Positions 5,701-59,213 of a stretch of 64,000 nt of DNA are shown piece after piece. The notes under the pieces were generated by a model. It searched no databases, was not told the origin of the DNA, and worked only from the letters and a program-made list of their open reading frames with translations. The stretch is from Monocercomonoides exilis PA203 (Eukaryota > Protista > Preaxostyla): positions 620,001 to 684,000 of the forward strand of contig LSRY02000008.1 in NCBI GenBank assembly GCA_001643675.2, written 5' to 3'. Each line of letters starts with the position of its first letter. Position 1 is the first letter of the stretch. Both the position numbers and the translations under genes were made by a program.

Positions 5701-8700
5701 CGTTTTCATCAGAAGAAGACACAAATATCGTCTCGCTCTGGTATTTCACAACCCTTGGTAGAAGATCTTCTTCTCCCACAAACGAGTCCGATGTGCATCC
5801 CCATATTGCCAGCTCCTTTACAAAAGGTGCTCTGAAATCCAGCAAGAATTGATCATCAACAATTTGATTTTCGATTGAGTGGCATCGAACATACACATCT
5901 CTCCCTCTCAATGCAGAGTTATCTTTGAACGTGATATTCGACAACATAAAGTTCAGAGGCTGCTCAGCTGTCGAGGTGCATTCCAGAAATAATCACCCAC
6001 CTCTTCCTGTGGTGGAGCAGAAGCACTCAGAAATCGTGCTAAATGAGCAGTCGAAGTTTCCTCCCTCATTCAGCACACAAAACATCCCTCCTCCCTTTTC
6101 ACACCTCATTCCACCACATCTCTTCATTGTTGTGTTTCGAATTACCATTTTCAATGGCTCATCAATGTTCTCATTTCGAATGATGGGAATATCATTGGTC
6201 GTGTTCTGTGTGACTTCTTCGAATACACTCCATTCAATGATTATGTTTTGTTCCTCTTCATTTTTCTCTCTTCTTGAACTCTTTGAAATACTCAATCCAC
6301 TTGCACCATCAAGCTCAACATTCTTCAATGTCAAATTTTTCATATTCAAAATTGTTGTTTGATGCACGGAAATAATATCTTTTGAAAAGCAAAGTGATTG
6401 AATTTCCACAAATTCCAATTGAACAGTTCCTCCATCTGCCTCAATCATCCCGTAATTCATTGGTTCTTTTCCACTTTCTTCATCTTTTGTGAACGAGCAG
6501 TCTTTCAAAGTCAATAACCCCTCGCTTGAGTCAACATGCATCAAATAATTGACTCCATTTGTGAATGAAGAAGGAATCACAAAGCTAATCAGTTTGAAAT
6601 TGGTGATTCCAGAAATCTTCATTGCTGAATCCCTTTCTCCTTCAAGCGATGAAACACATTTCAAAGAGCACATGTCAGTATTATTCGATTTAATAGAAAT
6701 TTCACTGAGTTCAATCCTTTTCTTTAGAATTCCTTTTCCAATGATGTTTATGTTCCTTTCGTTTGCTTTTGGCATTTTTGCCAACGAATAATCAATAGAA
6801 AGGCAAGGATAATCTGAAAATCCACAGGCAAGAATATCTTTCCCATCACCTCTAACAAATATCTCCGATCCGAGTTCAAGCCAGAAATAGACAAGTGGAA
6901 TGACATTCTCTGTATCATTCCCATCAAAGCCTCTCATGGAATTTAATGAAATATCATCCAGATTCTCTGATACAAATGGAAGAGAGGTGTTTGTGATGCT
7001 CTTCGTCAAGTTGAATGCTTCAACAAAAAGATCATTTCCATAATTAGCAATATTTGGCTTGTCTGCCTCAAAAACAGGTGATGATATCACAAATGAAGAA
7101 TAGTCATCGATCAACTTCAGTGCCATCCCTCCCCCAAACCCAGTCTTCCGTTCTTCTGCTGGTGCTGTGCATCTTATGAAAGAACATGAAATGACATTCA
7201 ATTGAGTATTTCCTTTCAAGCGGGTATTAATAGCCCCTCCTCTGCTTCCATCACCAGCCACACAGCATCCATCAAATTCACATTCTTCAATATTTATTTC
7301 ACTGTTTGAATTTTCATCGTTACTATTATCGATGTTCACACACCCTCCACTTCCAGTTGCTCTTTCTATTTCTGTAAAATGGCAGTTAGTCATGTTCAAC
7401 CACTGAGTGCTCATCAACTCGGTATATGAACTGCTTCCAGACAATGAGATCAATGGATAATCGCTCAAATTTATCGATGAAGCTGAAAATGAATCAATAA
7501 CCAAGGTTCCAGACTCAATAGATAAGAATAGAAATACCATTTCTGATGAAGGATCTTGAAGAGTGAGAGAACATTGAGACAGCGTTAGTGTTGAAGAAGA
7601 TGATGAAATGAAAGTGGAATGTGATGAAAAAGAAGAAGAAAGAGAGAAGATAAGTTTTGATAATTCTGTTTCAACATTTATTGAAATCATCTCTGAATTG
7701 GATGTTGAACTTGAATCAGAAACTTTCCATCCACTTTGATCGTCTTCTCCTCTGATATCATGTTTCTGTTCAGCAAAGGTCAATTCATCACTCATCAAAA
7801 TCATTCCATTCACAACAACTTTCTTTGTTCCTGCTTGTCTTGTGAGGGAGTGCTTCAAGGTCAAACAAGGAAACTGGACAATTCCACAATGTGAATGATC
7901 AGATGCCTCGGTGCAACTCACATATATTTCTTCTGGGATGGGAAGGAGATAGATGCATAGAGGAATTGCTAACCTTGTGTTTCCATTGTCGAATCCTCGC
8001 ACTTTGTCAAATGAATCCAAAGATGCTGTTACACATGTGATATTCTCTAATTTTGCTATCTCTTCCAGATTTGGGGAAATAACAAAGATATCATTCCCCC
8101 ATTTAGCTGTGTTTGTTCAAAAGATGAGGATATCAGGAAATTGGGATTTTCATTCAATAGCCGAAGAAGGATTCCTCCCCCAAGACCATTTGATGATGAA
8201 CAAAAGCATCCATTAAATAATCCGTCTTTCACTTTCACTTCATTTCCATCACCGACGCACAGCATCGTTGAACCTCCATCAGTCGATGTTGAGCTTCCAC
8301 ATCCAAAAAACGAACAAGAATTCAGTTCAATGTTTGCCTTGTCATTCAAAAACGACATCACAGCTGCTCCGCTGGTTGTTCTTTCAATTCCATCAAAGGT
8401 GCATTCTGAAAGTGTCAATGATATTTCATTTGTTGAAGAAAGCGAAAACAACGAAACAGTGGAGATAGTCTTTGCCCAATTCACATTTTCCATCTGCAGC
8501 ATACCACTCTGAATGTTAATCAGCTCTGTAGCAAATGCTGTATTTCCAGTTTGTTCACTTCCAGCAGAAATATTCATCCTGCTGATATGCATCTCTCCTG
8601 CTCCTGTGATCTCAAATAGCCTCGAGGCTCGATTATTTTCATATGCAGAGTCATGCACAAGAATAAGATCACTGATTGCTAAGATTCCTGTCGAAACTGA

Positions 8701-10545
8701 AAACAGAGACAGCCCAGATGCTTCAAATTCTGTATGGATTACTGTGCTCATATCGCTTTGACCGTAAATTGAATAAGTGTTAATTCCACAATCCAGGCAT
8801 TTAGTCTCTGTTATCGTTCCTGCAAGTATCTCAATATCTGTAACAATTTCAGGAATAAGCTGAGTCAAACAATGGCTAATAGTTTCACAAGGATGAATTT
8901 CATTCTGCCCACATGCATATGTGTCAATGGAATTAGGTTGTACTTCAGTCGAAGAAACAAATCTGATTCTTTCAAAATCGTTTTTAAGCCATTCACTTTT
9001 ATCAATAATTGAGTTATATTGTGAGCTGACTCTATTTGTTGTATTTCTTGTTGAATAACAGGTGGAATCAATATTGTTTGATGTCGAATTATGGAGAGCA
9101 ATATCATGTCCTCCTTTTGAACATGAATTGTTGTGAAAAAAGCAGTAATAAAACAAAATTCCGTAATTCAGGCTATTTATTAATATTCCAGCAGCACCTC
9201 CTCCGCACATTGAATGGCAATTGCAGAATAAACAATTAGAAAAAACAACCTGATCAGTGCAACTCCAATGTTCAATCGCGCCTCCAGCGGATGATTCCGA
9301 ATGATTTGCTTTGCAAGATGAAAATAATGAATTAATTATGCATTCTTTCTGCCTTTGAGTTTTTGTGGGACGTAAGTCAATTGCGCCCGCATCATTGCCT
9401 GCAGAGCAATTTTGAAAGGAGCAATCATCCACCATTGATTGATAATAAATGTTTTCTAAATACATCCCACCACCGCAACCATCTGAACTTGCTGTTGCTG
9501 CGCACTGAGTAAATGTGGAGTGCATCACGATGCATTCAGCGATTTTCAATGCATATATTGCACCCCCTCTTGTTGAGGAAGCGTTGCACCTCGTGAATGA
9601 ACAATTTTCAACTTTCAGAATGGCTTTTTCATTGTCATGTACATAGAGAGCACCTCCTTGCGAGGATGTGCAATCTTCCCATTCACACAACGAAAATGAT
9701 TGACTATTTGTCAAATTCATTTGCCCTTTTTTCTCAAGAGCATTCGTTTCTCTTTTCCCGAAGCTTACAGTTGTGTTTTCACAGACAAATTCATGTGAAG
9801 AATACGATCCACTCGAAATCCCTCCTTCAAATGCATTCACACACGAATAAATGAGGCTGTTCTCCATTGAACTTCGAAAGCATGAATGTTTCACATTATG
9901 ATCGCTTTTCTTATCAGATTTCACAGACATGTTTCTGAAGGCGCAATTATCAATCTCTTCACTTTTGCTCTTTCCTGACAATGGAAAATTGTCTGAAGAA
10001 GATGCAACTAGATTTTCCATGATAGAATTTCTCAAAATAGCAGTATTTGAATAATCCGATGAAAATATGAGACTGGAAGGGTTCAGATTCTTTTGAGAAA
10101 TCAAACTCATATTCACCATGCTTATTGACCCACTTTGCAAAAGAAAAGGAGATGTTGATTTTTGGAGCAAATTGCAGGAATCCAACATGACTCTCGACTT
10201 TTCAGTAATAAACATCAAAGATGAAAATAAATGTTCAAGTGCCACATTCTTCAGTCCAACTGTAGAATTGGAGAATCCCAAAAATGTGTTTTTCACTGTA
10301 GAAAGTCCTGATTGTAATCTTTTCGCTTCAGGCAACGTTTTCTGTTCAAATAGATAAATGTTATCACCCTTTAGTGGAAATTGTGCATCATTTGAGTTTC
10401 CTTGACCAAAATAAAGAGAATTATTGAAAAAATAACTGTTCGAAAGAAAACCTTTGTTCTCCAATGCGGATGTTCCAGAGATATCTTGTGCTTCAAATGC
10501 CTTCACAAGGAGCAAGCATGCAAAAAGGAACAAATGCATTCTCAT
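2777..10545 (-). pseudogene. Large type I membrane / receptor-like protein gene (~2590 codons): signal peptide, Cys-rich GG[AG]x repeats (PbH1/Pmp-like beta-helix), one TM helix, C-terminal kinase-like (TKL C-lobe) domain. Disrupted by a 1-nt frameshift (~8118) and an in-frame TGA (5993-5995).
   Basis: ORFs 8056-10599, 5993-8020 and 2777-5947 are collinear. N-terminus MRMHLFLFACLLLVKAFEAQ (ATG 10545). Repeated GGALY/GGAIY/GGGMY and CG...PCxTI motifs. TM FWVLIVIIMAFVLLIILIVAVISTLRWRK. Kinase-like LRWKAPEL..SFSIGMILWECLTLNVPF..QRPSL. The paralog at 40178+ reads SSFGANTAKWGND where this copy lacks one base. 8020 and 5947 are in the same frame (GRGG*LFLEC). Confidence 0.85.
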
Positions 10546-13500
10546 GCGGAATGATAATAAATTTTGATTTGAAAAATAAAACATTTTCTGAATGATCAAA
10601 AAATCCCTTAATAATTGTTTTCAACACATTTGGTAAAAACAATGTTTTTCTTTTACAATCACTTTGTGGCTTTTTGAAAAACAGTTGATGCATGTCCAAA
10701 GCATGCCACTACTTTGGTTTTTGTCAGGCATGAATTATATGCTGATGCAGATGAAATATTTGCACACAAAAAAATTTAATTTAATAAAACAATTAGTAAA
10801 ATAGGAATTAAACTGAATAAAAGGGGGAAAAAAACCTTTTCAGAAGAAACTGCTGTCCAATAAAGGCTTTCAAAGCAATTAATGCAATGTCAAAACACAT
10901 GCCCCCAAAATTTCACTTTGAGATATGTTGTTTCTAGCTATCAATTGTCACCTCACCCATTGAAATCAAATGGCGAGTCTTTCTTTTCCTCTTCTTTTCC
11001 CTTCTGCTCTTTATACTCTCACCTGTTTTGTCTTTTCACTCAGCTTCGTCTGCGTCTAACCCACAAACATCTAAATTACCTCTTCTTTGTTATTCTTCTC
11101 CCTCTTTCTTGCTTCTTCTCCATAATTAATGCTGACTCATTTTTGCAAACAGCTGATGTTCTGCAATTCAAAAATATCCTTCTCTGCTTTTCTCATTGAG
11201 AAAAGATGTCTCAAAGAAACCATTTGTTCCAATCAAAAGTGAATGTCATGCAAACCTTCTCTGCATATATTCTTGATAAAATCAGAAACATCAAAAATTG
11301 CAAAGAAACATACAAAGGGATCAAACTTGTTTTTTGTTGTCTCTCAAAAAATAAACACATTTTGCAAAATAAAGAAAAATAAAATAAAAATTCTTGAGCT
11401 TTCAATTTTTCCAATTCCACAAATCTTTCATCATTCAGAAAAAATAAAAAAAATAATTTTTTACTGCAAACAAGAAAGCATGCATCTTTTCCTTCTCCGT
11501 TAGCCAACCGTTCTCATTGTCAAATTCAAACAGCCTTCTCCGTCTGCCTCTTCTGTCTTCGCAATCTCTTGTTCCTTGCTTTCCATTCTTCATTGGCTCT
11601 GCCTCCATCTCTTTCCTTCTCCTTCTCATCAACCCCTTCCTTTCACTCTCTTTTCCATCTTCTTCTTTCTCTTCATTCGCTTTCTTCCTTGTCCTCCAAC
11701 AATGTTGTCTTTTCTTTCTGTCCAAAGCCTTCCAATGAAAAATCGTTCAACATCACAGCTTTTCTGAAGGATTGTGTGTGTTTGAAATTCAAATAGAAAT
11801 GCCTTCAAATTATCTCGTGCTAAATTATCTAAAAAGGGAAAGATAACGGGAAAGCTAATTGAATTGAATTTACAAATAAATGATTCAAACCTCTCAACAA
11901 CTTCAAAGTTATTGATGCAAAAGTACTGTTTCAAGAATTATTTTTCAATTCAAAGAAACCAATGCATTTTTCGCAAATCCAATAAATTCATAATCAAAAT
12001 GGGAGCATATTCGGAGAAGAATGCTTATCGGAATGAAATTGGATGTTGATTTTGGATATTGGCAAAATCAATGAAATAATTTTGGCTTCTCTTGGCAAGA
12101 CAAACATAACACATGGGACAAAAAAAAGGTGACGTTTGAAAAAAAACTAGTGGAGCACTCAAAGGCATTCTCTGTCGACGCGGATGACGTTTGTTGCGTT
12201 TTGACGAAATGATCAGCATCTCCTCCGCTGTTTGCAACAATTTGGCTCTTGCAGATGAAAAGGTTCCCACTGCTGAAGCGTGTGTTGGACGTATTGTCAT
12301 TCTTCCGAATTTTGTTTGTTCTGGCTGTTGAGCTGTCTGGATGAATGTGTATTCGATAATGCTCCCTCCTTTCAAAAAAAGCCTCCCTTGTTATATTTTC
12401 CCCTCCGCATCTCCATCGCATGCAAAGAGCAGAGTAGTTCTTGCCCTTTCCTTTTCGATGCTGAACTTGCAATAAGGTTTTATTTGGATTTTACAGTTAT
12501 CAAAGCATCTGTTATGGTTGCACAAATAATAAAAACTCAACATAAGCAAATATTTCATTGTAAATTTTTTCGACTTATTAACGCATTTGTGTGCAACGAC
12601 TTTATTACAGTTATGCAAATTGCTCTTGCCTTTAAGAAGAATGATTTGAATTAATCAATAATTAATTTTTGAGAATAATGTCTTTTCAAAATATCATATC
12701 AACTTGTTTCATGAAAAAGGACAAAAATTTATTTGTTATTTTTGAATACTTGGAATAAGATATTATATTCTTCGAAGGATTATGAAGTTCATTGTTTTCT
12801 ATTGTTTGAGATTTGAAAAAAAGAAATTGTAATTAATAGAAACAAATGTTTAAAATGTGACAAATTCAAAATGGAAATTTTTTAGGATTTTCAAAAAAAT
12901 AAGTGGTGAGATTTTTTGAAATATGAATTTCGAATAAGTCGTTTTCATTCATTTTTTGTTTGTCCACTTGTTTGAAAGTTTCAGATTCCTTTTCAACATA
13001 AAAATGTGCAAAATGAAGAACTGAATGAAGTGAATTTTAAAAATGATTTTTAAACAAAAGTCAACAATCGGAAGAAGTGAAGAACAAAAATTAGGGATAA
13101 TGGTCATTTTTTGAGAATGAAGAAAAAATTTGGTTCTTTTCTTGTTTTTATTTTTTCTCCTTTTTAACGCTTATTCATAAGTTCATTTCAAAGTCGAAAC
13201 CCTATCCAGTCACATCGATAACGATCAATATCGGATATCAGCACATCATTCTGTGAACAAACATTTTTTTGACACATTCTAATAAATTTCCCATCTCATA
13301 GAATCACAAAGAAATTTTTTTTTCAAAAAATACACTTTTCAAAAAAAAAAATGGTTCTTATTTCAATGGGAAATAAGTTTTTCATCAAAGACTTCAAATT
13401 TTCTAATAAATGATTTTGTCACTCTAAATGAAATGAGAAAACTCAAAAAAATAGTTATTTCCAAAATTTCAAAACGTAAATTTTACAAGAATTTCAGGAA

Positions 13501-14994
13501 TATCAAAAAAATTTGAAAGATAAATTATTGATCATAAATATCAGTGTTGGAACTCTCTGTTTCGAACAATTTGGGATATTATCACAATCGGACATTTTCA
13601 CAAAAAGTTGAGCAAAACCCGAAAGAATTTCATCCTGTTTCAATAATTTCATTTGGAATAATAGTCAATAATCACATTCAATTTGATTCATCAAACAAAA
13701 AATATGGATCATTCATTTTGAGTGCTTGCTCAAAAAATATCCAAAATGGTTCAAAGGCAATCAGACAATTGAATAATATTTTTGTAAAAAATATCATTTG
13801 TTTCATATTCGGGTGAATAAAAATATCGGATATTTTAAAAGAATTTCACTTCAGGCACATCACATTTTGTTTAAATTGGAATATTTCATAAATAATGATA
13901 TTTATTCAATTCATATGTAATTTCGTTGGCCGGAACAAGAATCAGATAAAAATGCGCTATATTTTTATTTCCTCAGAAAATTGAACAAATGTGATTTTTC
14001 CAAAATAATATTTTTTTGGATAAAAGAAAAAAAAAACTTATTTGAAATACTCACTTTTTGTTTGTGCAAACTTTTTATTTTTTTTCCCCAACAAAATAAA
14101 TAAAATCAAATTAATATCTTTTATTAAGTGCACATTGCCATATTATATTATAATTTTTGAAATCTTCACATTTTTCCATGTGTTGAAATATGGCTGATCC
14201 TTTTTGAAATCATGTTTTTTCTGTAAAAATATTTGGTTTGAAAATATGTTTTGCATATTTGTCAGTGAACATATTAAAGTGATAACACCGTCTTCAAAAA
14301 AAAATGTCATTAATGCATTTTAAAAATGTGCTTCATTAAACAATTGCAATTTAAAAAATACTGGAATAATAATATTCAATTCATTGACAAACGAAATATA
14401 AAAATTCGATACCCCGAAAAAAGTTATGATTACAAAAATAATCACCCATTTTCAAAGACACGTTCTTTTTGAAAATAATCACACACATGTTTATCAATGA
14501 TTTCACAGGTGCTTCTCTTCAAGTTCGCATATGCGCGGAAAAAAAATCGATATTTTTAACAAATAATTGAAAAAATAAAGTCAATATGGTTCTTCTCATA
14601 CAAATTTTTATTGTCATTCTTTTCAAAAAAAGTGTCAAAAAACTGTTCAAGATAATTGTTGAATTAACTAAACAAGAAAAAATAGTTGAAATTTAGAAGA
14701 AAAGAAATAAAGATATAGTTTTTCATATTTGATTAATACAAACCAATCAAATAAATAAATGCAGCAACAGAAAAAACCAATATTAATTTGGAACACACTT
14801 GATTAATTCAGATGATGTTCGTATTTGAACCTTTCAGAAAATTATCAACGGTCGAATTTTTCCTTGCAGAATTATCTGTTGAGAAATCCATGAAGAGCTT
14901 TTTAAAGGATTGTTTTCCATTTTGCGAAATGATGGAAAAAGAAAGAACAACTTTTGAGTTAAAAAAAAAAAAAAAATCGAAACATCTCATTTCT

Positions 14995-16459
14995 TTAAGC
15001 ATTCACAAAATAGTCTGAAATATTCAACGACAGTCCATGATAATATTGTCTGTTGAAAAAAATAAAAATTTCATGAAAGCTTGTGATGGTATCTTCGTAT
15101 CCTTCTTCTTCCATCTTTTCCAAAAACTCTTTTTTTGTTGCCTTTCTTTTCGCTTCGTAAGTTGTGTGATCTTTCTTTTCTTTCAATCGAATTGAAAGCT
15201 CAATGAAAAATACCAAGAATTCATATGTTTCATATTTATTCAATGTTTGTAGCTGCATCTTCTCCAAAACTGCATTAACAGCTCCTCCTTTCAATAAGAC
15301 GTCAATTTCTATCGCTTTATTATCTGCTATTTTTTTCAATAAATGAATGCATTGAAGGTACACTTCTCTGTAATTATCCTTAGCTGCCAGAAATACCCGA
15401 ACAATACAGTTTAAAAGTCCGACAAATTCTTCATTCCACATTGTGCAATAGAGAAAATAACGTTCCAAGGTTTTAAGCCATCTCAATAAAACAAGCTCTT
15501 CTTTCGTTTCTCTTCCTCTTTCTTCTTCTTTTCTCTTCCAATCCACACTTTTCATCAGCTCTTCTAATTCTCTTGCTGCTTCTCTCGCAAAATGCAGTTC
15601 ATTCACAATTACCCCTTCAAAGCAATCGTAGTATGGTAATCCGTTTACCAAAAACTGCCAAGATGATTGACATGCAAGTCGAGTCAGATTGTTGTGTTTT
15701 TGATGATAAAGGATAATCTCTTTGATCTTATAACGATACAGTTCATAATCCAATATCTTATCAAAAAATTAGAAAAAATAAGCAGAATCAATTCAACAAA
15801 GAGAGAAAAGAAAAATCATACAAAACATTTCCCAATGTGACATATAGCAAACAACGCCATTTCTATTTCCTTTTGAGTTTCCTTGTTTCTCTTCTTGCTC
15901 GATGCAGCTTTCAGAAGGCACTGTACACAGATTGAAATCAATTCCTTTGAGAAGAAGGTACTTATACAACCGTAACTTTTACAAAGATCAACCAGAAGCC
16001 TTTCATCCTTATCTTCTGTCTTTTCTTTTTCATTTATAATCATTTTCTCAAATCTTTTGCACAACAAAGATTTTTCAAAGCATCGATTCCACACATTTTT
16101 CAGCTCATAGCAATGCCCGATTTGCTTCAACAGAAAAATCACATTTCTCATCGAAAGTTTCTCTACTTTAATTATTACGTCCATTTCATCGAACATTTCT
16201 TTTGTGAAGACAGATTCAAATTCTTCTTCCTCCATTTCATCAATTATTTCATTCATTTCAAGGATTTTCTGTCTTTGTGCATTCTCATCGCAACGCCCCA
16301 GCTCACGAAGAAATTCTTCGAAAATTATAAAATAACAAACAGAATTGGGCTTTCAAATCACAGAATCATGAACAAACCTGAAAAATGCTCATTTGATGAC
16401 TTCTTTTTGCGTTCATCGATAGATTTATTATTAGCTCGAAAATCCTTTCTGTTTATCAT
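14995..16459 (-). CDS. 3-exon gene of an uncharacterised alpha-helical multigene family (family X, copy A; motifs IVNELHFAREAAREL, MEEEGYEDTI)
   Basis: ORFs 15816-16256 and 14995-15753 are joined by a GTATGA..AG intron. Short first exon from ATG 16459. Mirror of 34262-35729, where the splice phases were checked. Confidence 0.8.
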
Positions 16460-19400: not shown

Positions 19401-20018
19401 AATCTAAAAATCGTATATCTTGTGTAACTTCATTTGTCTCCAAATGGCTATATAATAATCTGTTCCGTTCTCATCGTGTTGCTCCACAACGCAGGGATTG
19501 GCCATTTCAACAATAACTCACATTCCTGCACTTTGGAGAGGATACAGACGGAAATATCTTCACAATCAATAGAAAAATAAAAATTACATGCATGATGTCT
19601 TTTTGTGTTATTGATGAAATTGTTGTATTACGTTGGCCATCCAATTTCCTATTATCATCAGATAGAATTTCAAAAATATTGCATCTCCATCATTGTCCGT
19701 TTTTTCCACGGGAGATTATGTTTGTAATTCTGCAGGTTAATTTCATTCATCAACTTTCATTTCGCAAATTGATATTCCAGTTCAAATAATGCTTTTCAAT
19801 CATTGAATCCATAACAAATAAAAGAAAGAACACAAAACTTCTCTTTTTCTTCGAAATTACTTGCCAAAGATAATATACGAAGGATGCCGATGTGAGTGCA
19901 CGCACTTTGACTTCCATTTGAGTTTATATTTTTCTCCAATTTCCTCTGCCCAAACATTCGCGTTTTCAATGTGAATGGCAAAACTGCATTGTGTTCTGGA
20001 CACAATGAACTTTAAAAA

Positions 20019-30590: not shown

Positions 30591-33500
30591 CTATGTACAG
30601 ATTTTTTTTAAAAAAATTGAATGAAGACAGCAATGCCATTTTGATATTCACAATGAAAGTTCATTTGATTGGATTGAAGAAAACGTATGAAAAATGAAAA
30701 CTCACAAAAGCCCTAAAAAAATAAATTCATTCAAACTATTCCATCTTTCGATAACATTTTCGACTTGTATTTTCAAAGAAATAAAACTGTTAATATATTG
30801 AAATCTTTTGTAATGGATTCCATGATCATCAGATTTGAAAAAACGGAATTATCCGTCCATAAAATGAGAATTCCGTGAGAGAACATTTCTTGTAGTACTA
30901 GGAATATTATTTCCTGTGATGACAACAAGAAATGAGGCAATGCAATATTTTTGGAATTCTGTCTGATGATTTTTGGTAATTTGATGACCAAGGGGAATGC
31001 AACAATTTCATCAATAACACAAAAAGACATTATGTATGCAACTTATATTGTTCTATTGATTGTGAAGATATTTCTATTTGTATCCTCTCCAGAGTCCAGA
31101 AATCCTGCTTATTGTTGAAATGGCCAATCTCCGCTTTGGAGAGAAAGATGATGAGAATGGAGCTGATTATTATATAGCCATTGGGAAATAAATGAAGTTT
31201 CGCAAGATACATGATTTTCATGATTTTTATTTGGTGCAGGAGGTGAAATCAAATTCAACTTTCATATTATAAAATGAAGATTTATGGATGGAATTCTGTG
31301 AAGGATAAAATCTGCACAAAATTATATAGCACTTGGGAGCATAAGGCAGGGGAAGCGGTTTTTTGGCAAGGAAAGTGGTTAGCCAACCAAGGGAATGATA
31401 TTAATCACTTAAAAACAGGCAAGAATTCAACAAAAAAAAGGAGGGCCCCAAAATATCGGTTTTATTTATAAAGTTTTCCTGTTTCTCGGACTGCGCCAGG
31501 CAGACATGGAAAGCAACAAAATTCTATTTCTGATTCCGCTTTTGTTTCAAAAGAGTGGAGAAACGCCATCGAAGATACAACTTATTGTCGAGCATTTTTT
31601 TATCAATCGGACAACATTCAAGCCAACTTCATTTGAAATTCGTTCTTCGAAGGGACAGCCATTTTGAGCAATCAACGTGATTATCATTCGAAATTTGCTT
31701 TCTTCGGAGCCACAGGCAACTGCAGAAAAAATACAGAATATTTTTGATCAGCCTCTTCAAGCGCAGCCATCCAGAGATTTTATTGCTATGCTTCATTTGT
31801 GTGGCATCGATGTGGTGTTGATTTGTAAGGGCTGTGCTGCTTCGCATTGGGTGCGCTGAGGTGTTTGCAAACGTTAGACAAGACGGCCATGTTTTCTCAG
31901 ACAAACATTGAGAGTGGACAATTTCTCTGAAGACTGTTTGATTTATTTGTTTATTTCTGGTTGCAATGCTGTTGGCCTGTGTTTATCTTGCGTTGCGGCT
32001 TTCAAATAAGAAATGGCTTTTTTATAAAAAAAATGGAGAATTTCATCAGATTCTGCTTTCAATCGAACATTTTAATGGAACTGGTTGAGTTCGCTCTTCT
32101 CCTCAGAGGCTTGGCCGTCAACAAGGTGAATGAAGCATCACTGTGTTCTTTCATCTTCTTTCTAGCATTGCAACAATTATTGAAGCAAAAATATTATTTT
32201 TTTTTCAAATGTGAGGGAGCTTCCACAGCGTGTGGGAGCTCATGCGATGAGAAGGAGGATTCAATTGTTTGTGTGAGGGAGACAGCAGCAGCTGCTGTTG
32301 TTGTTGCCAGGCAGTCAAATTAAAACAGTTCTATTTCTGAAATGTCTGATGGTTGATTGTAACATCACAGGCGATTCAGCTGTGAAGTCGAATGGAGACA
32401 GCACAAGAAAAGCAAAAGACTGCTCCAATCAGAAGCAACTTAAGAGAGACATTTGTTGCATTGAAGGAACAATGGAAGAAGAAAATGAATGACAATGAAA
32501 GAAAGAGGAGGAGGAAGAAGAAGAAAAAGAAATAAAGAAGAAGATAATTATGATGAGTTCGAAGAAGAAGAAAAAGAAGAAGAAGACGAAGAAGAAATAG
32601 AAGAGGAGGAGGAAGAAGAAGAAGAATCAACAGTCGAAATACAAATAGGTTTCACATTGATTGCGAAAAGAGGAAAAAATTTGCATTCTTCAATTTCATT
32701 TTGAATCGGTAAAGAAGACGAAAAATGGGAAATTCGATCAAAATTGTTGGGTTTTTTGCGGGCAAACTGCAAAAGATGGCTCGATGAGTATTTTGAGGGA
32801 TGAAGAAGAGAATTTATTAATGGGTTCGGAGAAATTGTCTTCGGAGAAACAGAATTTGAAGAAAATGAAGAAAAAGAAGAATTTGAAGGATCTTCGAAGA
32901 GATTGATGGAAAAGTTGTTGAAGAAGAAGGAGAAAGAAGGAGAAATGAAATTGATGTGATTGAGAAATAGAGGAAGAAAGAAGGAAATAAGTGAATTTGA
33001 GGAGGAAGAGGAAGGTGAAGAAAGCGATGATGATGAGGTTGGCAATACATTCAGAGAGATATAAAGAAGATACACAGAAGAAGAAGAAGGCTTTTCTGTT
33101 GGAAAGTCATGTTGAATACAGAAATAAAATGAACAATTGACGAGATATCGTTCATCCATTCGGCTGTCCCATTGAATTCAACTGAACATGAAATGCTCAA
33201 TCAAACAAGACAAATCGAATAATTCGATTTTTCTTTCATCAGAGCAGACAGTATGACAGAACATGAATCAATGAACTTGTCACTCCCTTCATTCAGACTG
33301 AATGCGATTCAAAAAAAGAAAGATGAATTCCTTCCATTGAAGACTGTTCATTGTTTTCACCCAAATTAAGAAATGGCGATTTGTGCACCATCTTTGTGTT
33401 TCTCAAGACTTAGTTGCTTTTGCTGTTTCATTTTTTCAGTCTCGTTCTGTCTGAAAGAAAACCGCTTTTTCTGTTGAATTTGCAAAACAATTCGCAGTTC

Positions 33501-34261
33501 AAAAAAAGTTCATTTTCTGCTCTTCTTTTGTTGTGTCTTTGTCTGCTTTTCAAAATGAAAACCTTTGTTGTTGGAGTTGGTCTCTCAAATAAAACTTTTT
33601 TTGCTTAATTCCAAATTCCAAAATGTCATTTTGGGCTTGGCGAATTTTGTTCGGTTCTTTCTCCAAATTAGTTTGTTTTGCATTTGCATCCTTTTGACAC
33701 AATTGCCCTTTTCTTTTGCTCTTCTTATCTTTTTTGATTTTTGAATTCTTTCATCTTCAACAACTCAACGAATCATTTTAATAAGAAGATTAAAAAGAAG
33801 GCAAGTTGAAAAAAGATCACATTGTTAAGGTGTGCAAACATTTGTTCTCCTTGTTTCAGTCAGAATTGATGAATCCAAATGAGAAACATATTTATTCCTC
33901 AAGAATCGTTTTATTTGCCCGTTTCTATTTTCTCACAAAAAGAATTTCATTTGTTTCTTAGAAGCGGTTGCAATTCCATCTCAGAATGCATTTGCTTCAA
34001 ATTGAAAAAAGACAAAAAAAAATATCATCATTATGAATTTCTGTTGGTTTGATCAATCAGAAACAAAAAAGTTTTCCATTCTTTCCCATTCAGCCGAGCT
34101 CTGCTGTCTCGTTGAACATTTATTGCAAAAACAATTATTTTATAGAACAAAGCAATTTGTGTTGAAGTTGAACTTGCTTCTTGAAAGAAAATAAATGACG
34201 TTTGAATTTTTCGTTTATTTTGTTGAGAAAAGAATGAATATGAACATGTTATTCACTGAAC

Positions 34262-35729
34262 ATGATAAGCAAAAAGGATTTTCGAGCTATTGATAAGTCT
34301 ATCGATGAGTTCAAAAAGAAGTCATCAAATGAGCATTTTTCAGGTTTGTTCATGATTCTGTGATTTGAAAGCCCAATTCTGTTTGTTATTTTATCATTTT
34401 CGAAGAATTTCTTCGTGAGCTGGGGCGTTGCGATGGGAATGCACAAAGACAGAAAATCCTTGAAATGAATGAAATAATTGAAGAAATGGAGGAAGAAGAA
34501 TTTGAATCTGTCTTCACAAAAGAAATGTTCGATGAAATGGACGAAATGATTAAAGAGGGGGAAGTGAAAATTGAAAATGCTTTTTATTTGCTGAAACACC
34601 TTGGATATTGCATCGTTTTGAATGACATGTGGGTTTCAGGTTTTGGGTATTCTTCATTGAACAAAAGATTCGAGAAAATGATTATAAATGAAAAAGAAAA
34701 GACAGAAGATAAGGATGAAAGGCTTCTGGTTGATCTTTGTAAAAGTTATGCTTGTATAAGCACCTTCTTCTCAAAGGAATTGATTTCAATCTGTGTACCG
34801 TGCCTTCTGAAAGCTGCATCGAGCAAGAAGAGAAACAAGGAAACCCAAAAGGAAATAGAAATGGCGTTGTTTGCTATATGTCACATTGGGAAATGTTTTG
34901 TATGATTTTTCTTTTCTCTCTTTGTTGAATTGATTTTGCTTTTTTTTATCTATTTTTTTTTGATAAGATATTGGATTATGAACTGTATCGTTATAAGATC
35001 AAAGAGATTATCCTTTATCATCAAAAACACAACAATCTGACTCGACTTGCATGTCAATCATCTTGGCAGTTTTTGGTAAACGGATTACCATACTACGATT
35101 GCTTTGAAGGGGTAATTGTGAATGAACTGCATTTTGCGAGAGAAGCAGCAAGAGAATTAAAAGAGCTGATGAAAAGTGTGGATTGGAAGAGAAAAAAAGA
35201 AGAAAGAGGAAGAGAAACGAAAGAAGAGCTTGTTTTATTGAGATGGCTTAAAACCTTGGAACGTTATTTTCTCTCTTGCACAATGTGGAATGAAGAATTT
35301 GTCGGACTTTTAAACAGTATTGTTCGGGTATTTCTGGCAGCTAAGGATAATTACAGAGAAGTGTACCTTCAATGCATTCATTTATTGAAAAAAATAGCAG
35401 ATAATAAAGCGATAGAAATTGACGTCTTATTGAAAGGAGGAGCTGTTAATGCAGTTTTGGAGAAGATGCAGCTACAAACATTGAATAAATATGAAACATA
35501 TCAATTCATGTTATTTTTTATTGAGATTTCAATTCGATTGAAAATAAAGAAGAAGGATGAAGTGGAAGAAGCGAAAAGAAAGGCAACAAAAAAAGAGTTT
35601 TTGGAAAAGATGGAAGAAGAAGGATACGAAGACACCATCACAAGCTTTCATGAAATTTTTATTTTTTTCAACAGACAATATTGTCATGGACTGTCGTTGA
35701 ATATTTCAGACTATTTTGTGAATGTTTAA
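34262..35729 (+). CDS. Family X gene, copy A': join(34262..34343,34406..34899,34968..35729)
   Basis: Introns GTTTGT..CGAAG (34344-34405, phase 1) and GTATGA..TAAG (34900-34967, phase 0) give an uninterrupted frame MISKKDFRA..EFLRELGRC..CFILDYELY..SDYFVNV*. Confidence 0.85.
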
Positions 35730-38700
35730 AGAAAAAGAACGTGTTGAATTTTGAAACTCAAAAGTTGTTCTTTCTTTTCTTATCATTTCACAAAATGGAA
35801 AACAATCCTTTAAAAAGCTCTTCATGGATTTCTCAACAGATAATTCTGCAAGGAAAAATTCGACCGTTGATAATTTTCTGAAAGGTTCAAATACGAACAT
35901 CATCTGAATTAATCAAGTGTGTTCCAATTAAAAAAAAGTTTATTCTGTTGCTGCATTTATTTATTTGATTAGAAAGTTTTGTCCAAATATGAAAAACTAT
36001 ATCTTTATTTCTTTATTTCTGAATTTCAACTATTTTTTCTTGTTTAGTTAATTCAACAATTATCTTGAACAGTTTTTTGACACTTTTTTTGTGAAGAATG
36101 ACAATAAAAATTTGTATGAGAAGAACCATATTGACTTTATTTTTTCAATTATTTGTTAAAAATATCGTTTTTTTTCACGCATATGCGGACTTGAAGAGAA
36201 ACACCTGTGAAATCATTGATAAACATGTGTGTGATTATTTTCAAAAAGAACGTGTCTTTGAAAATGGGTGATTATTTTTGTAATCATAACTATTTTCGGG
36301 GTATCGAATTTTTATATTTCGTTTGTCAATGAATTGAATATTATTATTCCAGTATTTTTTAAATTGCATTTGTATAATGAAGCACATTTTAAATTGCATT
36401 AATGACATTTTTTTGAAGATAGTGTTATCACTTTTATATGTTCACTGACAAATATGCAAAACAAATTTTCAAACCAAATATTTTTACAAAAAAAAAATGA
36501 TTTCAAAAAGGATCAGCCATATTTCAACACATCGAATAATGTGAAGATTTCAATAATTATATCTAATATGGCAATGTGTGCTTAAAAAAAAATATTAATT
36601 TGATTTCATTTTTTTTATTGAAAAAAAATGGTTTGCTCAAAAAAAAAAGGAGAATTTCAAATAAGTTTTTTTTCTTTTGTCAAAAAAATATTTTTTTGGA
36701 AAAATCATATTTGTTCAATTTTCTGAGGAAATAAAAATATAGCGCATTTTGATTAGATTCTTGTTCCGGCCAACGAAATTACATATGAATTGAATAAATA
36801 TCATTATTTATGAAAAATTCCAATTTTAATAAAATGTTAAGTGCCTGAAGTGAAATTCTTTCGAAATGTTTGATATTCTTTTTCACTTGAGTATGAAACA
36901 AAAGATATTTTCACAAAAATATTATTCAATTGCCTGATTGCCTTTGAACCATTTTGGATATTTTTTGAGCAAGCACTCAAAATGAATGATCCACATATTT
37001 TGTTTGATGAACAAAATCGAATGTAATTATTGACTATTATGACAAATGAAATTATTGAAACAGGATGAAATTCTTTCGGGTTTTGCTCAACTTTTTGTGA
37101 AAATGTCCGATTGTGATAATATCCCAAATTGTTTGAAACAGAGAATTCCAACGCTGATATTTATGATCAATAATTTATCTTTCAAATTTTTTTGATATTC
37201 ATGAAATTCATGTTAAATTAACGTTTTGAAATTTTGGTAATTACTATTTTGAGAGTTTTCTTATGTCATTGATTCTGACAAAATCGTTTATTAGAAAATT
37301 TGAAGTCTTTGATGAAAAACTTATTTCCCATTGAAATAAGAACCATTTTTTTTTTGAAAAGTGTATTTTGAAAAAAAAATTTCTTTGTGATTCTATGAGA
37401 TGGGAAATTTATTAGAATGTGTCAAAAAAATGTTTGTTCACAGAATGATGTGCTGATATCCGATATTGATCGTTATCGATGTGATTGGATAGGGTTTCGA
37501 CTTTGAAATGAACTTATGAATAAGCGTTAAAAAGGAGAAAAAATAAAAACAAGAAAAGAACCAAATTTTTTCTTCATTCTCAAAAAATGACCATTATCCC
37601 TAATTTTTGTCCTTCACTTCTTCCGATTGTTGACTTTTGTTTGAAAATCATTTTTAACATTCACTTTGTTCAGTTTTTCATTTTGCATATTTTTATGTTG
37701 AGGAGGAATCAAAAACTTTCAAACAAGTGGACAAACAAAAAATGAATGAAAACGACTTATTCGAAATTCATATTTCAAAAAATCTCACCACTTATTTTTT
37801 TGAAAATCCTAAAAAATTTCCATTTTGAATTTGTCTCATTTTGAACATTTTTTTTTTTTAATTACAATTTCTTTTTTTCAAATCTCAAACAATAGAAAAC
37901 AATGAACTTCAAAATCCTTCGAAGAATAAAATATCTAAATACAAGTGTTTGAAAATTTAAAATGGATTTTTGTCCTTTTTCGTGAAACAAGTTGATATGA
38001 TATTTTGAAAAGACATTTTTCTCGAAAGATAATTATTGATTAATTCAAATCATTCTTCTTAAAGGCAAGAATAATTTGCATAACTGTAATAAAGTCGTTG
38101 CACACAAATGCGTTAATAAGTTGAAAAAATAAACAATAAATAATTACAAATGTTGAGTTTTTTTTATTTTGCGCAACCATAACAGATGCTTTGATAACTA
38201 TAAAATCCAAATAAAACCTTATTGTGAGAGCAGCATCAAAAGGAAAGGGCAAGAACTACTCTGCTCTTTGCATGCGATGGAGATGCGGAGGGGAAAGGGT
38301 TATAAGCGAGGGTTTTTTTGAAAGGAGGGAGAATAATCAAACACGTATTCATCCAGACAGCTCAACAGCTAGAACAAACAAAATTCGGAATAAAGGCAAT
38401 ACGTCCAACAGATGCTTCAGCAGTGGGAACCTTTTCATCTGCAAGAGCCAAATTGTTGCAAACAGCGGAGGAGATGCTGATCATTTCGTCAAAACGCAAC
38501 AAACGTCATCCGCGTCGACAGAGAATGCCTTTGAGTGCTCCGCTAGTTTTTTTTCCAACGTCACCTTTTTTTTGTTACATGTATTATGTTTGCCTTGGCA
38601 AGAGAAGCCAAAATTATTTCATTGATTTTGCCAATATCCCAAATCAACATCCAATTTCATTCCGATTTGCATTCTTCTCCGAATATGCTCCCATTTTAAT

Positions 38701-40177
38701 TGCGAATTTATTGGATTTGCGAAAAATGCATTGGTTTCCTTGAATTGAAAAATAATTCTCGGAATAGCACTTTTGCATCAATAACTTTGAAGTTGTTGAG
38801 AGGTTTGAATCATTTATTTGTAAATTCAATTCAATTAGCTTTCCCGTTATCTTTCCCTTTTTAGATAATTTAGCACGAGATATTTCGAAGATACACCAGA
38901 TTTTGTTCAAAGACGTGCAATTGATCAGAAAAGCTGTGATTTTGAACGATTTTTCATTGGAAGGCTTTGGACAGAAAGAAAAGACAACATTGTTGGAGGA
39001 CAAGGAAGAGAGCGAATGAAGAGAAAGAAGAAGATGGAAAAGAGAGTGAAAGGAAGGGGTTGATGAGAAGGAGAAGGAAAGAGATGGAGGCAGAGCCAAT
39101 GAAGAATGGAAAGCAAGGAACAAGAGATTGCGAAGACAGAAGAGACAGACGGAGAAGGCTATTAGAATTTGACAATGAGAACGGTTGGCTAACGGAGAAG
39201 GAAAAGATGCATGCTTTCTTGTTTGCAGTAAAAAATTATTTTTTTTATTTTTTCTGAATGATGAAAGATTTGTGGAATTGGAAAAATTGAAAGCTCAAGA
39301 ATTTTTATTTTATTTTTCTTTATTTTGCAAAATGTGTTTATTTTTGAGAGATTACAAAAAACAAGTTTGATCCCTTTGTATATTTCTTTGCAATTTTTGA
39401 TGTTTCTGATTTTATCAAGAATATATGCAGAGAAGGTTTGCATGACATTCACTTTTGATTGGAACAAATGGTTTCTTTGAGACATCTTTTCTCAATGAGA
39501 AAAGCAGAGAAGGATATTTTTGAATTGCAGAACATCAGCTGTTTGCAAAAATGAGTCAGCATTAATTATGGAGAAGAAGCAAGAAAGAGGGAGAAGAATA
39601 ACAAAGAAGAGGTTATTTGGATGTTCGTGGGTTCGAAGCAGACGAAGCTGAGTGAAAAGACAAAACAGGTGAGAGTATAAAGAGCATAATGGAAAAGAAA
39701 GAGGAAAAGAAGAGGAAAAGAAAGAGAAAGAGGAAAAGAAAGACTCGCCATTTGATTTCAATAGGTGAGGCGATAATTGATAGCTAGAAACAACACATTT
39801 CAAAGTGAAATTAAGAGCGTATATGTTTTGACATTACTTTAATTGCTTTGAAAGCCTTTATTGGACAGCAGTTTCTTCTGAAAAGGTTTTTTTTTTCTTT
39901 TATTCAGTTTTATTCCTATTTTTTTTTAAACTGTTATATTAAATTAAATTTTTTTGTGTGCAAATATTTCACCTGAATCAGCATATAATTCATGCCCGAC
40001 AATAACAAAAGAAGAAGCATGCTTTGGACGTGCATCAACTGTTTTTCAAAAAGCCGCAAAATGATTGCAAAAGAAAAACTTTGATTTTTCCAATTGTGTT
40101 GAAAACAATTATTAAGGGATTGTTTGATCATCCAGAAAATATTTTATTTTTCAAATCAAAATTTATCATCATTCCGC

Positions 40178-43145
40178 ATGAGAATGCATTTGTGCATTTT
40201 TGCATGCTTGCTCCTTGTGAAGACATTTGAAGCACAAGATATCTCTGGAACATCCGCATTGGAGAACAAAGGTTTTCTTTTGGATTGTTATTATTTCAAT
40301 AATTCTCTTTATTTTGGTCAAGGAAACTCAAATAATACACAATATCTGTCAGAGACTGATGTTGAATTATTATTTGAACAGAATGCATTGTTAGAAGTGA
40401 AAAGATTACAATCAGGACTTTCTACAGTGAAAAACACATTTTTGGGATTCTCCAATTCTACAGTTGGACTGAAAAATGTGGCACTTGAACATTTATTTTC
40501 ATCTTTGATGTTTATTACTGAAAAGTCGAGAGTCATGTTGGATTCCTGCAATTTGCTCCAAAAATCAACATCTCCTTTTCTTTTGCAAAGAGGGTCAATC
40601 AACATGGTGAATTTGAGTTTGATTTCTCAAAAGAATCTGAACCCTTCCAGTCTCATATTTTCATCGGATTATTCAAATACTGCTATTTTGAGAAATTCCA
40701 TCATGGAAAATCTAGTTGCATCTTCTTCAGACAATTTTCTATTGTCAGGAAAGAGCAAAAGTGAAGAGATTGATAATTGCGCCTTCAGAAACATGTCTGT
40801 GAAATCTGATAAGAAAAGCGATCATTATGTGGAACATTCATGCTTTCGAAGTTCAATGGATAACTGCCTCATTTATTCGTGTGTGAATGCATTTGAAGGA
40901 GGGATTTCGAGTGGATCTTATTCTTCACATGAATTTGTCTGTAAAAACACAACTGTAAGCTTCGGGAAAAGAGAAACGAATGCTCTTGAGAAAAAAGGGC
41001 AAATGAATTTGACAAATAGTCAATCATTTTCGTTGTGTGAATGGGAAGATTGCACAGCCGAACAAGGAGGTGCTCTCTATGTTCATGACAATGAAAATGC
41101 GACTTTAACTGTTGAAAATTCGTCATTTGTGAGATGCAACGCTTCATCCACAAGAGGTGGAGGAATATATGCTTTGAAAATCGCTGAATGCATCGTGCAA
41201 CATTCAATATTTGTTCAATGCACATGTGCTTCGACAACAGATTTTGGCGGAGGAGGAATAATGGGAGAGTTTATTTACGTTCAATCAATGGCTGATGATT
41301 GCTCCTTTCAAAATTGCTCTGCAGGAAATGATGGAGGGGCACTTGAACTGTTTCCGACAAACACTCAAAGACAAAAACGTTGCGTTACTAATTCTTTGTT
41401 TGATAACTGCCGATGCAACAGTTCCTCTGATAGCGCAGGTGGAGCATTTATTCATTGGGTTCCAACGGACAAAGTTATAATTTCAAACTGCCTATTCCGA
41501 AATTGCAATTCAATGTGCGGAGGAGGCGCTGTGATACAGTATATAAATGCTAATAATAATGGAACATTGCTTTATTACTGCTTTTTTCACAACAATTCAT
41601 GTGTGAAAGGAGGGCACGATATTGCTCTTCAAGAATCGAATTCAAACAATATTGATTCCACCTGCTATTCAACAAGAAATACAACAAACAGAGTTAGCAT
41701 TATATATAACTCAATTGTTGATAAAAGTGAATGGCTTAAAAACTATTTTGAAAGAATCAGATTTGCCTCCTCAGCGCAAACAGAACCAAATTCCATTGAC
41801 ACATATGCATGTGGACGGGATGAAAGCCATCCATGCAGAACCATCAGCCATTGTCTCACTCAACTTATTCCAGACTTTGTGAAGGATATCAAGATCCTAT
41901 CAGGAACGATTACAGAGACCAAGAATGTGGATTGTGGAATTAACACTTATTCAATTTACGGTCAAAGCGATATGAGCACAACAGTCCAAACAGAATTAGA
42001 TGCAGCTGGGATGTCTCTTTTTTCTGTCTCGACAGGCGCATTCTCTTTAAATTTCATCACCATTGAGCATGATCCTATGCAAACGAATAATCGTGGCTCA
42101 AGGCTATTTGAGATCACAGGAGCAGGAGAGATGCATATCAGCAGGATGAACATTTCTGCTGGAAGTGAACAAACCGGAAATTCAGCATTTGCTACAGAGC
42201 TGATTAACATTCAGAGTGGTATGCTGCAGATGGAAAATGTGAACTGGGCAAAGACAATCTCATCAACCTCGTTGTTTTCGCTTTCTTCAACAAATGAAAT
42301 ATCATTGACGCTTTCAGGCTGTGCCTTGAAGGGTATTGAAAGAACAACGAGCGGAGCGGCAGTGATGTCGTTTTCCGATGACAAGGCAAGCATTGATGTG
42401 AATTGTTGCAGTTTTGAAGGATGTGGAAGCAGAACATCGGCTGATGGGGGATCGATGATGCTGTGTGTCGGGAGTGAAAATGAAGTGAAAGTGAAAGGCG
42501 GACCTTTTGATGGATGCTTTTGTTCAACAACAAATGGACTTGGGGGAGGAATCTTTCTTCGATTGCTGAATGAAAATCCCAATTTCCTGATATCCTCTTC
42601 TTTTGGTGCAAACACTGCCAAATGGGGGAATGATATTTTTGTCATTTCGCCAAATCTAGAAGTGACTGCAAAGCCACAAAAAATCACGTGTGTGACAGCC
42701 ACCTTGGATTCTATTGAGAAGGTGAGAGGATATGACAACGGAAACACAAGTGTTGCTATACCTCTGTGCATCTATCTCCTTCCCACTCCAAAAGAAATAA
42801 ATGTGAGTGGCACAGATGCATCTGACAATTCGCACTGCGGAATCGTCAAATTCCCCTGTTTGACTTAAAAGCACTCCCTCACACGTAAAACGGGGCAAAA
42901 GAAAGTTGTAGCGAATCTAATGATTATGATAGATGATGAACTTAACTTTCCCAATCGCTATAATGAAATTCGAGGAAATAATGATCAAAGCGGTTTGACA
43001 GTTTCTGATACCACAGCAGGAACAAATATGGCAGTGGTGACAGTTGGGGTTGAAACGGAATTATCGAAACTCATCTTATCTCTTCCGTCATCCCTTTTTC
43101 TTCGCTCCATTTTCATTCTCTCTTCATCATCATCTCTTCTTCTTC
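40178..43145 (+). pseudogene. 5' third of the receptor-like surface protein gene (paralog of 2777-10545); nonsense TAA at 42866-42868 and truncation at ~43145
   Basis: The 914-aa ORF aligns with 8056-10599 plus the start of 5993-8020. The same frame continues after the TAA (KHSLTRKTGQKKVV, ORF 42920). No TM or kinase part follows. Confidence 0.85.
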
Positions 43146-59097: not shown

Positions 59098-59213
59098 TCT
59101 CTTCTTCTTCCTCTTCCTCTTCCTCTTCCTCTTCCTCTTCCTCTTCTTCTTCCTCTTCCTCTTCCTCTTCTTCTTCCTCTTCCTCTTCTTCTTCTTCTTC
59201 CTCTTCCTCTTCC

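Follow-up and report, generated by a model that had tools for sequence, protein, structure and literature searches.

How does a retrotransposon come to lie at the exact centre of a large palindrome, and did it build the arms that surround it? The question is raised by a 64,000-nt stretch of the Monocercomonoides exilis PA203 genome (contig LSRY02000008.1, positions 620,001 to 684,000; hereafter the window), for which a sequence-only reading had proposed that a DIRS-type element, through its inverted terminal repeats (ITRs) and/or its recombinase, nucleates or maintains inverted duplication of host genes.

Anatomy of the palindrome and its central element

Self-comparison of the window bears out the large inverted arms around a DIRS element that this reading had described: 7592-23202 is the reverse complement of 43129-27420, giving a 35-kb palindrome whose mirror is centred on a single-copy core of 4217 nt (23203-27419; Table 1). 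The unique stretch also ends where it was said to, beginning 38-47 nt upstream of the ORF1 ATG (23241) and stopping directly past the stop of the YR ORF (27414). The core does encode the RT and YR, but the spacer is not the whole element, as had been supposed; the innermost 68 nt of each arm (lTer and lICR) also belong to it. The arms align colinearly in three blocks, of 10.6 kb (89.9% identity), 1.6 kb (87.6%) and 3.1 kb (98.4%, with 1603 nt at 100%), and are non-uniform, the inner 2.96 kb being essentially identical whereas the outer 12.6 kb is patchy, at 68-99%.

Table 1. Coordinates of the palindrome and its parts in the window
Feature	Position	Strand	Remarks
Old left arm	7592..19702		Host gene block; colinear with 43129-30921
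Hypervariable stretch of old arms	19703..20242 (counterpart 30381-30920)		Just outside young zone; 63-65% identity
Transition zone	20243..20404 (counterpart 30219-30380)		4 mismatches in 162 nt
Young zone, template side	20405..23135	+	Element's 5' host flank, with ORF 20460-21446
Left terminus (lTer)	23136..23202	+	Innermost left arm; homology among 21 copies starts here
Single-copy core	23203..27419	+	ORF1, RT/RNase H ORF, YR ORF
Left internal complementary region (lICR)	27420..27487	+	Reverse complement of lTer; innermost right arm, mirror pivot
Young zone, copied side	27488..30218	-	Exact mirror of 20405-23135
Old right arm	30921..43129		Mirror of 7592-19702

The element is one of about 28 copies of a DIRS1-like retrotransposon family of M. 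exilis, and its core is colinear with 22 other copies over 1-4217 at 85-96% identity. ORF1 (23241-24122) is followed by an RT/RNase H ORF (24014-26248) and a YR ORF (25522-27414) that overlaps the RT ORF over 25522-26248. The RT domain is of the Ty3/gypsy-related type (RVT_1, E 1.6e-28), with a weak match to RT_RNaseH_2 (E 0.026), and the YR ORF matches Phage_integrase (E 1e-7), pointing to a tyrosine recombinase instead of a DDE integrase; relatives occur in M. exilis and in metagenomes. Like DIRS-1 of Dictyostelium and other DIRS1-like elements (PMC3266345, in excerpt), the family has a gag-like ORF, then one for RT/RNase H that the YR ORF overlaps, together with unequal ITRs, ICRs that abut at the circular junction, and no duplication of the host target. 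Unlike them, it has no detected methyltransferase domain, a Pfam search after RNase H giving no match at E up to 5 in the window element (PF05869 is carried by some of its distant relatives), and the window copy has neither a right ICR nor a right ITR and lies between mirrored stretches of host sequence.

What has been lost is clear from the family's termini. Compared in inverted orientation, the 98-nt left terminus and the 79-nt right one agree at about 90%, and their outer ends differ; the first 26 nt of lTer are predicted to fold into a small hairpin. Canonical copies continue after the core with an exact 68-nt complement of lTer and directly then with the complement of the right terminus, a circular junction in the sense of the ICR definition and junction model given for DIRS elements in PMC3266345 (in excerpt). 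Their 3' tail after lICR consists of rICR, a spacer and rITR, about 245 nt. The window copy is without these last ~245 nt, and the mirrored 5' flank begins directly after lICR; on the 5' side the copy joins host DNA as in an ordinary insertion. Target-site duplication is absent from the family, the flanks of 19 copies sharing only a 2-3-nt AA(T) overlap with the junction. Deletion between short direct repeats is frequent in the family, as in the ICR-deleted copies L007, L011, L015, C32 and C66.

As for host content, the left outer arm holds the N-terminal ~830 codons of a giant receptor-kinase-like gene together with members of a 3.1-kb gene family. Outer-arm genes belong to multi-copy families that are 75-84% identical elsewhere in the genome, and ORF 40124-42868 aligns with ORF 8056-10599 at 81% identity over 827 aa, ungapped. 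The inner-arm ORF (20460-21446) lies upstream of the element in the same orientation; a Pfam search with it returned no match, and Atlas leads were weak and armadillo-like. The inner arm has no further genomic match above about 73%, so its high-identity copy exists at the window locus only.

Ages of the parts and a probable history

Outward from the element, the arms show 0 substitutions and one homopolymer indel in 2729 aligned nt (20405-23135 versus 27488-30218), followed by 4 differences in 162 nt, beyond which identity drops sharply to about 64%. Across the hypervariable stretch (19703-20242), which is of nearly equal length in both arms, K is about 0.5, and BLAST is blank over 19695-20108; farther out K is 0.081 (10600-19702) and 0.196 (7592-10599). 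The element's terminal branch measures 0.0206, its nearest copies being 3.6% away within a star-like young burst. Assuming similar neutral rates in element and host arms and no conversion of the element from other copies, the outer 12.6-kb arms appear at least twice as old as the insertion, since an arm K of 0.08-0.20 stands against a branch of about 0.02; because they would predate it, the element should not have nucleated the 15.6-kb arms. By the same clock the inner mirror copy is, to judge from divergence, far younger than the element, as a branch of 0.021 against 0 differences in 2729 nt would place the repeat before the inner 3-kb duplication.

The locus was thus probably assembled in three steps: an older host palindrome, a DIRS insertion, and a recent fold-back or templated repair pivoting on lTer/lICR. 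Divergence suggests that a block of host genes first underwent inverted segmental duplication, and that a DIRS1-like retrotransposon, whose insertion is evident from the family comparison, would have landed near the palindrome's centre. Very recently, a break may have occurred on the element's 3' side, whereupon the 3' end carrying lICR would have paired with lTer 4.2 kb away on the same molecule, and synthesis would have produced a mirror copy of some 2.7-3 kb of the 5' host flank. A conserved patch (20243-20404 / 30219-30380) is the likely place where the nascent strand returned to the chromosome, in the homologous old right arm; homology-guided rejoining would depend on these 162 nt, since identity drops to about 64% immediately beyond the young zone. 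Such a copy would have overwritten the right ICR, the right ITR and the inner old right arm, leaving the palindrome centred exactly on the element. Mirror identity starts exactly at the outer end of lTer/lICR. On this reading the element's role is that of supplying a pre-existing inverted repeat, and the re-centred palindrome would be a by-product of break repair, with no dedicated amplification system.

Two ideas of the sequence-only reading survive in altered form. That the ITRs nucleate the inverted duplication agrees with a symmetry that turns, to the nucleotide, on the element's own inverted repeat, but the pivot is the left terminus plus ICR, not the ITR pair. Fold-back priming fits the single-copy loop, the distal loss on one side and two parallel copies; it does not extend to the outer 12.6 kb, which are older than the element. 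Among Logan short contigs (100-300 nt) of public runs, none joins core, lICR and arm-specific sequence, and loose ends of other copies begin at 27487. A Pfam search for SAE2/CtIP, whose absence might have made palindromes frequent, was blank, but its controls were silent too; Mre11 is present in the genome.

Other copies and competing explanations

Flanks are unrelated in 19 of the 23 full-length copies and mirrored at 3 of about 28 loci: the window copy, C27 and C66. At C27, 898 nt of flank are mirrored at 99.9% and a copy of the whole 3' tail lies on the 5' side, turned on the same pivot as in the window, within a palindromic context of about 1 kb only; at C66, 192 nt are mirrored at 99% and the pivot is the conserved ITR. 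A further locus, C44, has a pair of 5' fragments in inverted orientation. Mirrored identity is at least 99% in 3/3 cases although the elements differ in age, which could reflect continuing arm-to-arm conversion, not single recent events. A 3' transduction was rejected as the source of the C27 flank: 584 mirrored nt are a member of a ~1-kb foldback repeat family, and there is no progenitor locus, because the nearest other member is only 90% identical. C32, also a candidate mirrored case, was rejected on fine alignment, which resolved the flanks into direct copies, 559 nt long and 98.7% identical, of a foldback element's palindromic core; the apparent mirror identity arises because that core is itself symmetric. 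On the same contig as the window lies a 42-kb palindrome (C80:1301190-1343262) with a non-element centre of 418 bp and one element copy per arm, where the element is a passenger only; large palindromes thus form in M. exilis without a DIRS element at the centre.

The survey of genomic copies for inverted flank identity that the sequence-only reading had proposed yields C27 and C66 on one side and the 19/23 unrelated full-length cases on the other, and the larger claims of that reading find no support. A retroelement-driven amplification or homogenisation system is at odds with those unrelated flanks and with the non-element centre at C80. An element whose effective ITRs have grown to kilobases and carry host genes is contradicted by an inner arm unique at high identity, a window copy without its right terminus, and other copies with unrelated flanks. 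Nothing implicates the recombinase in nucleating or maintaining duplication, and the locus gives no support to a dedicated element-encoded amplification system.

Fold-back on the element's repeats could instead have produced the whole 15.6-kb palindrome, later arm-to-arm conversion keeping only the inner 3 kb identical. The pivot geometry would be the same, the hypervariable 19703-20242 could block conversion and confine it to the inner zone, and the family's mirrored flanks are all at or above 99% whatever the element's age. We nevertheless consider this unlikely, for a branch of 0.021 predicts at most about 0.04 between arms of equal age, whereas K is 0.081 for the middle of the arms and reaches 0.196 across the receptor gene. 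Any conversion between the outer arms would push their origin further back, and this genome makes large palindromes with no DIRS element at their centre. A two-copy intermediate, in which element and flank were copied tail-to-tail into the other arm and a deletion then ran between one lICR and the other's inverted lTer, has a comparably low probability. Those two sequences are mutual direct repeats, and the product would be exactly as observed; a precursor of this type is known (C80:1301190-1343262, one copy per arm), and the family often loses sequence between its short direct repeats. Set against this are the need for two events, including the movement of a 4.6-kb heterology between 90%-identical arms, and its implausibility in the roughly 1-kb palindromic context of C27.

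The element might also have acted more directly, either through a read-through transcript that self-primed on lTer/lICR and gave a palindromic cDNA that converted the locus, or through a recombinase cut at the ICR that made the break. The mirror does begin exactly at the lICR/rICR boundary, which is the circular junction of the DIRS model (PMC3266345, in excerpt), the upstream ORF 20460-21446 is oriented like the element, and mirrored flanks occur at 3/~28 loci. That boundary is also merely the end of homology, however, the C27 and C66 events broke on the other side or used another pivot, and the recombinase is predicted from sequence alone; an element-driven origin is therefore very unlikely. 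A bolder version makes DIRS copies self-made fragile sites: the putative recombinase would cut the ICR, and the end in lICR would fold onto the left terminus and mirror neighbouring genes. The ICR duplicates the circle-junction recombination site as double-stranded DNA in the genome, and a cut there would leave an end exactly in lICR. We hold this quite unlikely; if true, the family would repeatedly create local gene palindromes and homogenise them anew. That assembly software or chimeric Nanopore reads created the inner mirror, or the join through the element, is highly improbable. The assembly was built with Canu from ONT reads of N50 8.9 kb and polished in ten Pilon rounds (PMC8767320, in excerpt), and perfect 3-kb repeats are difficult to polish. 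Yet both outer arms must be real, given their 8-20% difference, and the junction of lICR and mirrored flank lies on a 68-nt repeat, far under any assembler overlap, so that reads must carry it. Chimeric reads would not contain a 4.2-kb spacer with a natural repeat at its borders, C27 and C66 show the same architecture in different flanking DNA, and coverage is about 150-fold; a weak hint comes from run X1, in which word depth of young-zone contigs is ~2x that of the contig at 30350-30463.

Parallels and meaning

Fold-back duplication seeded by inverted repeats is known from the Tetrahymena rDNA palindrome and from palindromic amplification in yeast and mammals. The break-repair history preferred here shares with it mirror arms that abut a pre-existing short inverted repeat, DNA between the repeats kept single-copy as a loop (4.2 kb in the window), and the disappearance, on the side of the presumed break, of what lay beyond the repeat (about 245 nt here, comprising rICR, spacer and rITR). 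It differs in being interstitial, in its short copied tract of about 3 kb, which probably rejoined in an older homologous arm with no chromosome end and no breakage-fusion-bridge cycles, and in its repeat, formed by the terminus of a retrotransposon together with that element's internal complementary region. Large palindromes such as those of the human Y chromosome undergo arm-to-arm gene conversion, and the window resembles them in having near-identical arms beside the centre and older divergence elsewhere. Unlike theirs, its identical zone begins at an inserted element's repeat and includes loss of the element's 3' end, which argues that copying happened as a discrete event and that steady homogenisation is not the whole account. 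Foldback or long-TIR composite transposons also have long inverted flanks around a coding core, whereas here the inner arm is at a single locus and other copies have termini of 68-98 nt and unrelated flanks. Human inverted duplications have been attributed to a fold-back mechanism (PMC3907307, in excerpt), and widely spaced inverted repeats are a source of rearrangement in long single-stranded regions (PMC10164571, in excerpt). Mirrored host flanks do not appear as a feature of the DIRS superfamily in the excerpted survey of PMC3266345 or in a limited literature search on DIRS and palindromes, and the excerpted genome paper (PMC8767320) does not mention palindromes, inverted repeats, DIRS or retrotransposons.

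The window thus offers a clean natural case in which retrotransposon replication signals (a terminus and an ICR, 4.2 kb apart) serve as the hinge for mirror copying of host genes, and it shows that a hinge of this kind can give an older palindrome a new centre and renew part of it. The findings also suggest that fold-back copying at breaks beside inverted repeats is perhaps unusually frequent in M. exilis, a frequency that would bear on the expansion of its very large receptor-kinase gene families.

Anatomy of the palindrome and its central element

Positions 7592-23202 are the reverse complement of 43129-27420 in both a seed-and-extend scan and a self-BLAST of the window. Together with the domain matches, these comparisons bear out the coordinates and description in the sequence-only reading, which had placed two inverted arms around a unique stretch encoding a reverse transcriptase (RT) and a tyrosine recombinase (YR). 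That stretch is the core of a DIRS1-like element, the window copy; the closest matches to the window's proteins are other M. exilis proteins, and a domain search of the element detected no methyltransferase domain.

Features of the palindrome and the element (arm segments in left-arm coordinates, from a global alignment of both arms read outward from the element)
Feature	Coordinates	Details
Single-copy stretch between arms	23203-27419	three ORFs
ORF1	23241-24122	in single-copy core
RT ORF	24014-26248	RVT_1, E 1.6e-28
YR ORF	25522-27414	overlaps RT ORF; Phage_integrase, E 1e-7
Arm block 1		10.6 kb, 89.9% identity, colinear
Arm block 2		1.6 kb, 87.6% identity, colinear
Arm block 3		3.1 kb, 98.4% identity, including 1603 nt at 100%, colinear
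Inner zone	20405-23134	no substitution over 2729 nt; a single homopolymer indel
Next outward	20243-20404	4 mismatches in 162 nt
Next outward	19703-20242	identity drops abruptly to ~64%
Mid outer arm	10600-19702	identity patchy, 68-99%; K = 0.081
Receptor-gene part of outer arm	7592-10599	K = 0.196

A search of the genome (82.3 Mb, 101 contigs) found 22 further full-length colinear copies of the core at 85-96% identity, with about 28 loci when deleted and fragmentary ones are counted. Homology between copies starts at window position 23136, 67-68 nt left of the core, and extends ~312 nt past it on the right. The right tail of the family opens with 68 nt that match the left terminus exactly in inverted orientation (the left internal complementary region, lICR). 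Directly after them comes rICR, an inverted match to the right terminus, then ~170 nt, and finally the right inverted terminal repeat (ITR). DIRS1-like elements are defined in PMC3266345 by lICR and rICR abutting at the circular junction, ITRs that are unequal and the lack of a target duplication; the M. exilis family shares all of these.

The window copy has an ordinary insertion junction on its 5' side. On its 3' side the element ends with lICR at 27487, and everything from 27488 onward mirrors the 5' host flank, with rICR, spacer and right ITR gone; the pivot of the palindrome is therefore the left terminus and lICR (68 nt, 4.2 kb apart), not the ITR pair. The 67-nt left terminus has a fold z of -3.1, and its first 26 nt (23136-23161) are a small, imperfect palindrome with arms of 11 nt around a 4-nt spacer, which resembles the core site of a recombinase. 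Several other copies (L007, L011, L015, L022, L026 and L024, at their right ends) have lost the ICRs by deletion between lICR and the right ITR, which have a 45-nt direct repeat in common; crossover points vary among these copies.

Ages of the arms and the element

In a tree of 21 aligned full-length copies, the window copy sits in a star-like young burst, with a terminal branch of 0.0206 and its closest copies 3.6% off. Arms formed at or after insertion would be expected to differ by at most ~0.04. The K of 0.081-0.196 found across the outer arms, set against that maximum, argues that these 12.6 kb are at least twice as old as the insertion. Conversely, the mirror copy in the inner zone is far younger than the insertion: a copy as old as the insertion should show ~110 differences, and none is seen.

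The outer ends of the arms fall within a giant receptor-kinase-like gene. Its left copy runs past the arm into the transmembrane and kinase part, and the right copy is an N-terminal ORF of 914 codons, 81% identical to the left over 827 aa, ungapped. A genome search assigned the remaining arm genes to dispersed multi-copy families and found no second close copy of the inner arm. Each arm also contains an older inverted paralogue pair, 73% identical (15045-15609 versus 20820-21386, and the mirror images), and there have therefore been three generations of inverted duplication at this locus.

Flanks of other copies and other palindromes

The sequence-only reading had proposed comparing the flanks of all copies. 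Flanks are unrelated beyond the termini in 19 of the 23 full-length copies, and mirrored in two copies besides the one in the window. The copy on contig C27 (L017, L031, L032; C27:599611-605621) shares 898 nt at 99.9% between its two sides; the complete 3' tail and a further 584 nt of flank have been copied onto the 5' side, on the same pivot as in the window. This flank is an arm of a foldback repeat ~1 kb in length, whose family has at least 40 loci and makes up about 0.1% of the genome. In the copy on C66 (L027, L024; C66:223129-232722), which has lost its ICRs, 192 nt are mirrored at 99% on the conserved ITR pivot. An insertion with inverted repeats of 468 nt (99.8%) at its ends also splits this copy, at core position ~1850.

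A candidate third case, the internally deleted, ICR-less copy on C32 (L026, L029, L033, L034; C32:220697-225433), was rejected: its flanks are direct repeats of 559 nt (98.7%) that duplicate the near-perfect palindromic core of another member of the foldback family. The symmetry of the duplicated part around the centre of that palindrome is what staggered cuts at a cruciform base would be expected to leave, and it may hint at structure-targeted insertion or at capture when a cruciform is resolved. In or beside members of this foldback family lie three copies or fragments of the DIRS element (L017; L026/L029; L030 at C17:705586-706388), reflecting either nesting in repeat-rich islands or target preference.

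The window lies at C80:620001-684000, and contig C80 also holds a second palindrome, of 42 kb (C80:1301190-1343262; L035-L040), with 20.9-kb arms that are 97.8% identical and include several-kb zones at 100%. Its centre is a 418-bp spacer that is neither repeat nor element, and each arm bears one DIRS copy (L012, L014), both with the same internal deletion; large palindromes arise in the M. exilis genome without a DIRS element at the centre. At C44:533299-536079, two inverted element 5' ends (each the terminus with 209 nt of core; 91% identical) face each other 2.3 kb apart and may represent a further palindrome involving the family.

A proposed history and its rivals

A three-step history is the most economical reading of the window locus. 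An old host palindrome would have formed, and a DIRS element would have inserted near its centre. More recently, a break on the 3' side of the element would have let the lICR-bearing end pair with the left terminus of the same molecule and copy ~2.7-3 kb of 5' flank, the new strand rejoining the homologous old right arm within its conserved 162-nt patch. A single event of break, fold-back and rejoining would account for the exact centring, the lost 3' signals, the sharpness of the boundary and the presence of two ages. The window locus has the geometry already described for inverted repeats, some of them widely spaced, that undergo fold-back or templated repair (PMC10164571, PMC3907307).

The idea that the element's inverted repeat seeds the palindrome survives in part: the repeat is the hinge of a real rearrangement at three loci of the family, but the 15.6-kb arms were probably not made by the element, their outer portions being older. 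An element-seeded palindrome whose inner zone was homogenised later is accordingly improbable in our estimation, and we give the same small weight to a history in which an intermediate with two copies lost the DNA between lICR and an inverted left terminus. An origin at the level of RNA or recombinase seems somewhat less probable still. The assembly was built from Nanopore data (12.9 Gb, read N50 8.9 kb) with Canu 1.8, Nanopolish and ten Pilon rounds, and the genome paper (PMC8767320) makes no mention of palindromes, inverted repeats, DIRS or retrotransposons. An assembly artefact is unlikely: outside the inner zone the arms are 8-20% different, the repeat at the key junction is only 68 nt long, much shorter than an assembler overlap, and other loci show the same architecture.

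Elsewhere in the assembly, two element copies with identical flanks lie on different contigs (L019, C38:849145-853360; L020, C52:22754-26969), which points either to a segmental duplication or to a haplotype or duplicate contig left uncollapsed. Outside the palindrome, the window contains tandem repeats with units of ~180 and ~360 nt at 47804-49999, within a minus-strand ORF of 731 codons, and a short-period tandem array at 59094-59466 within the ORF at 58732-60390.
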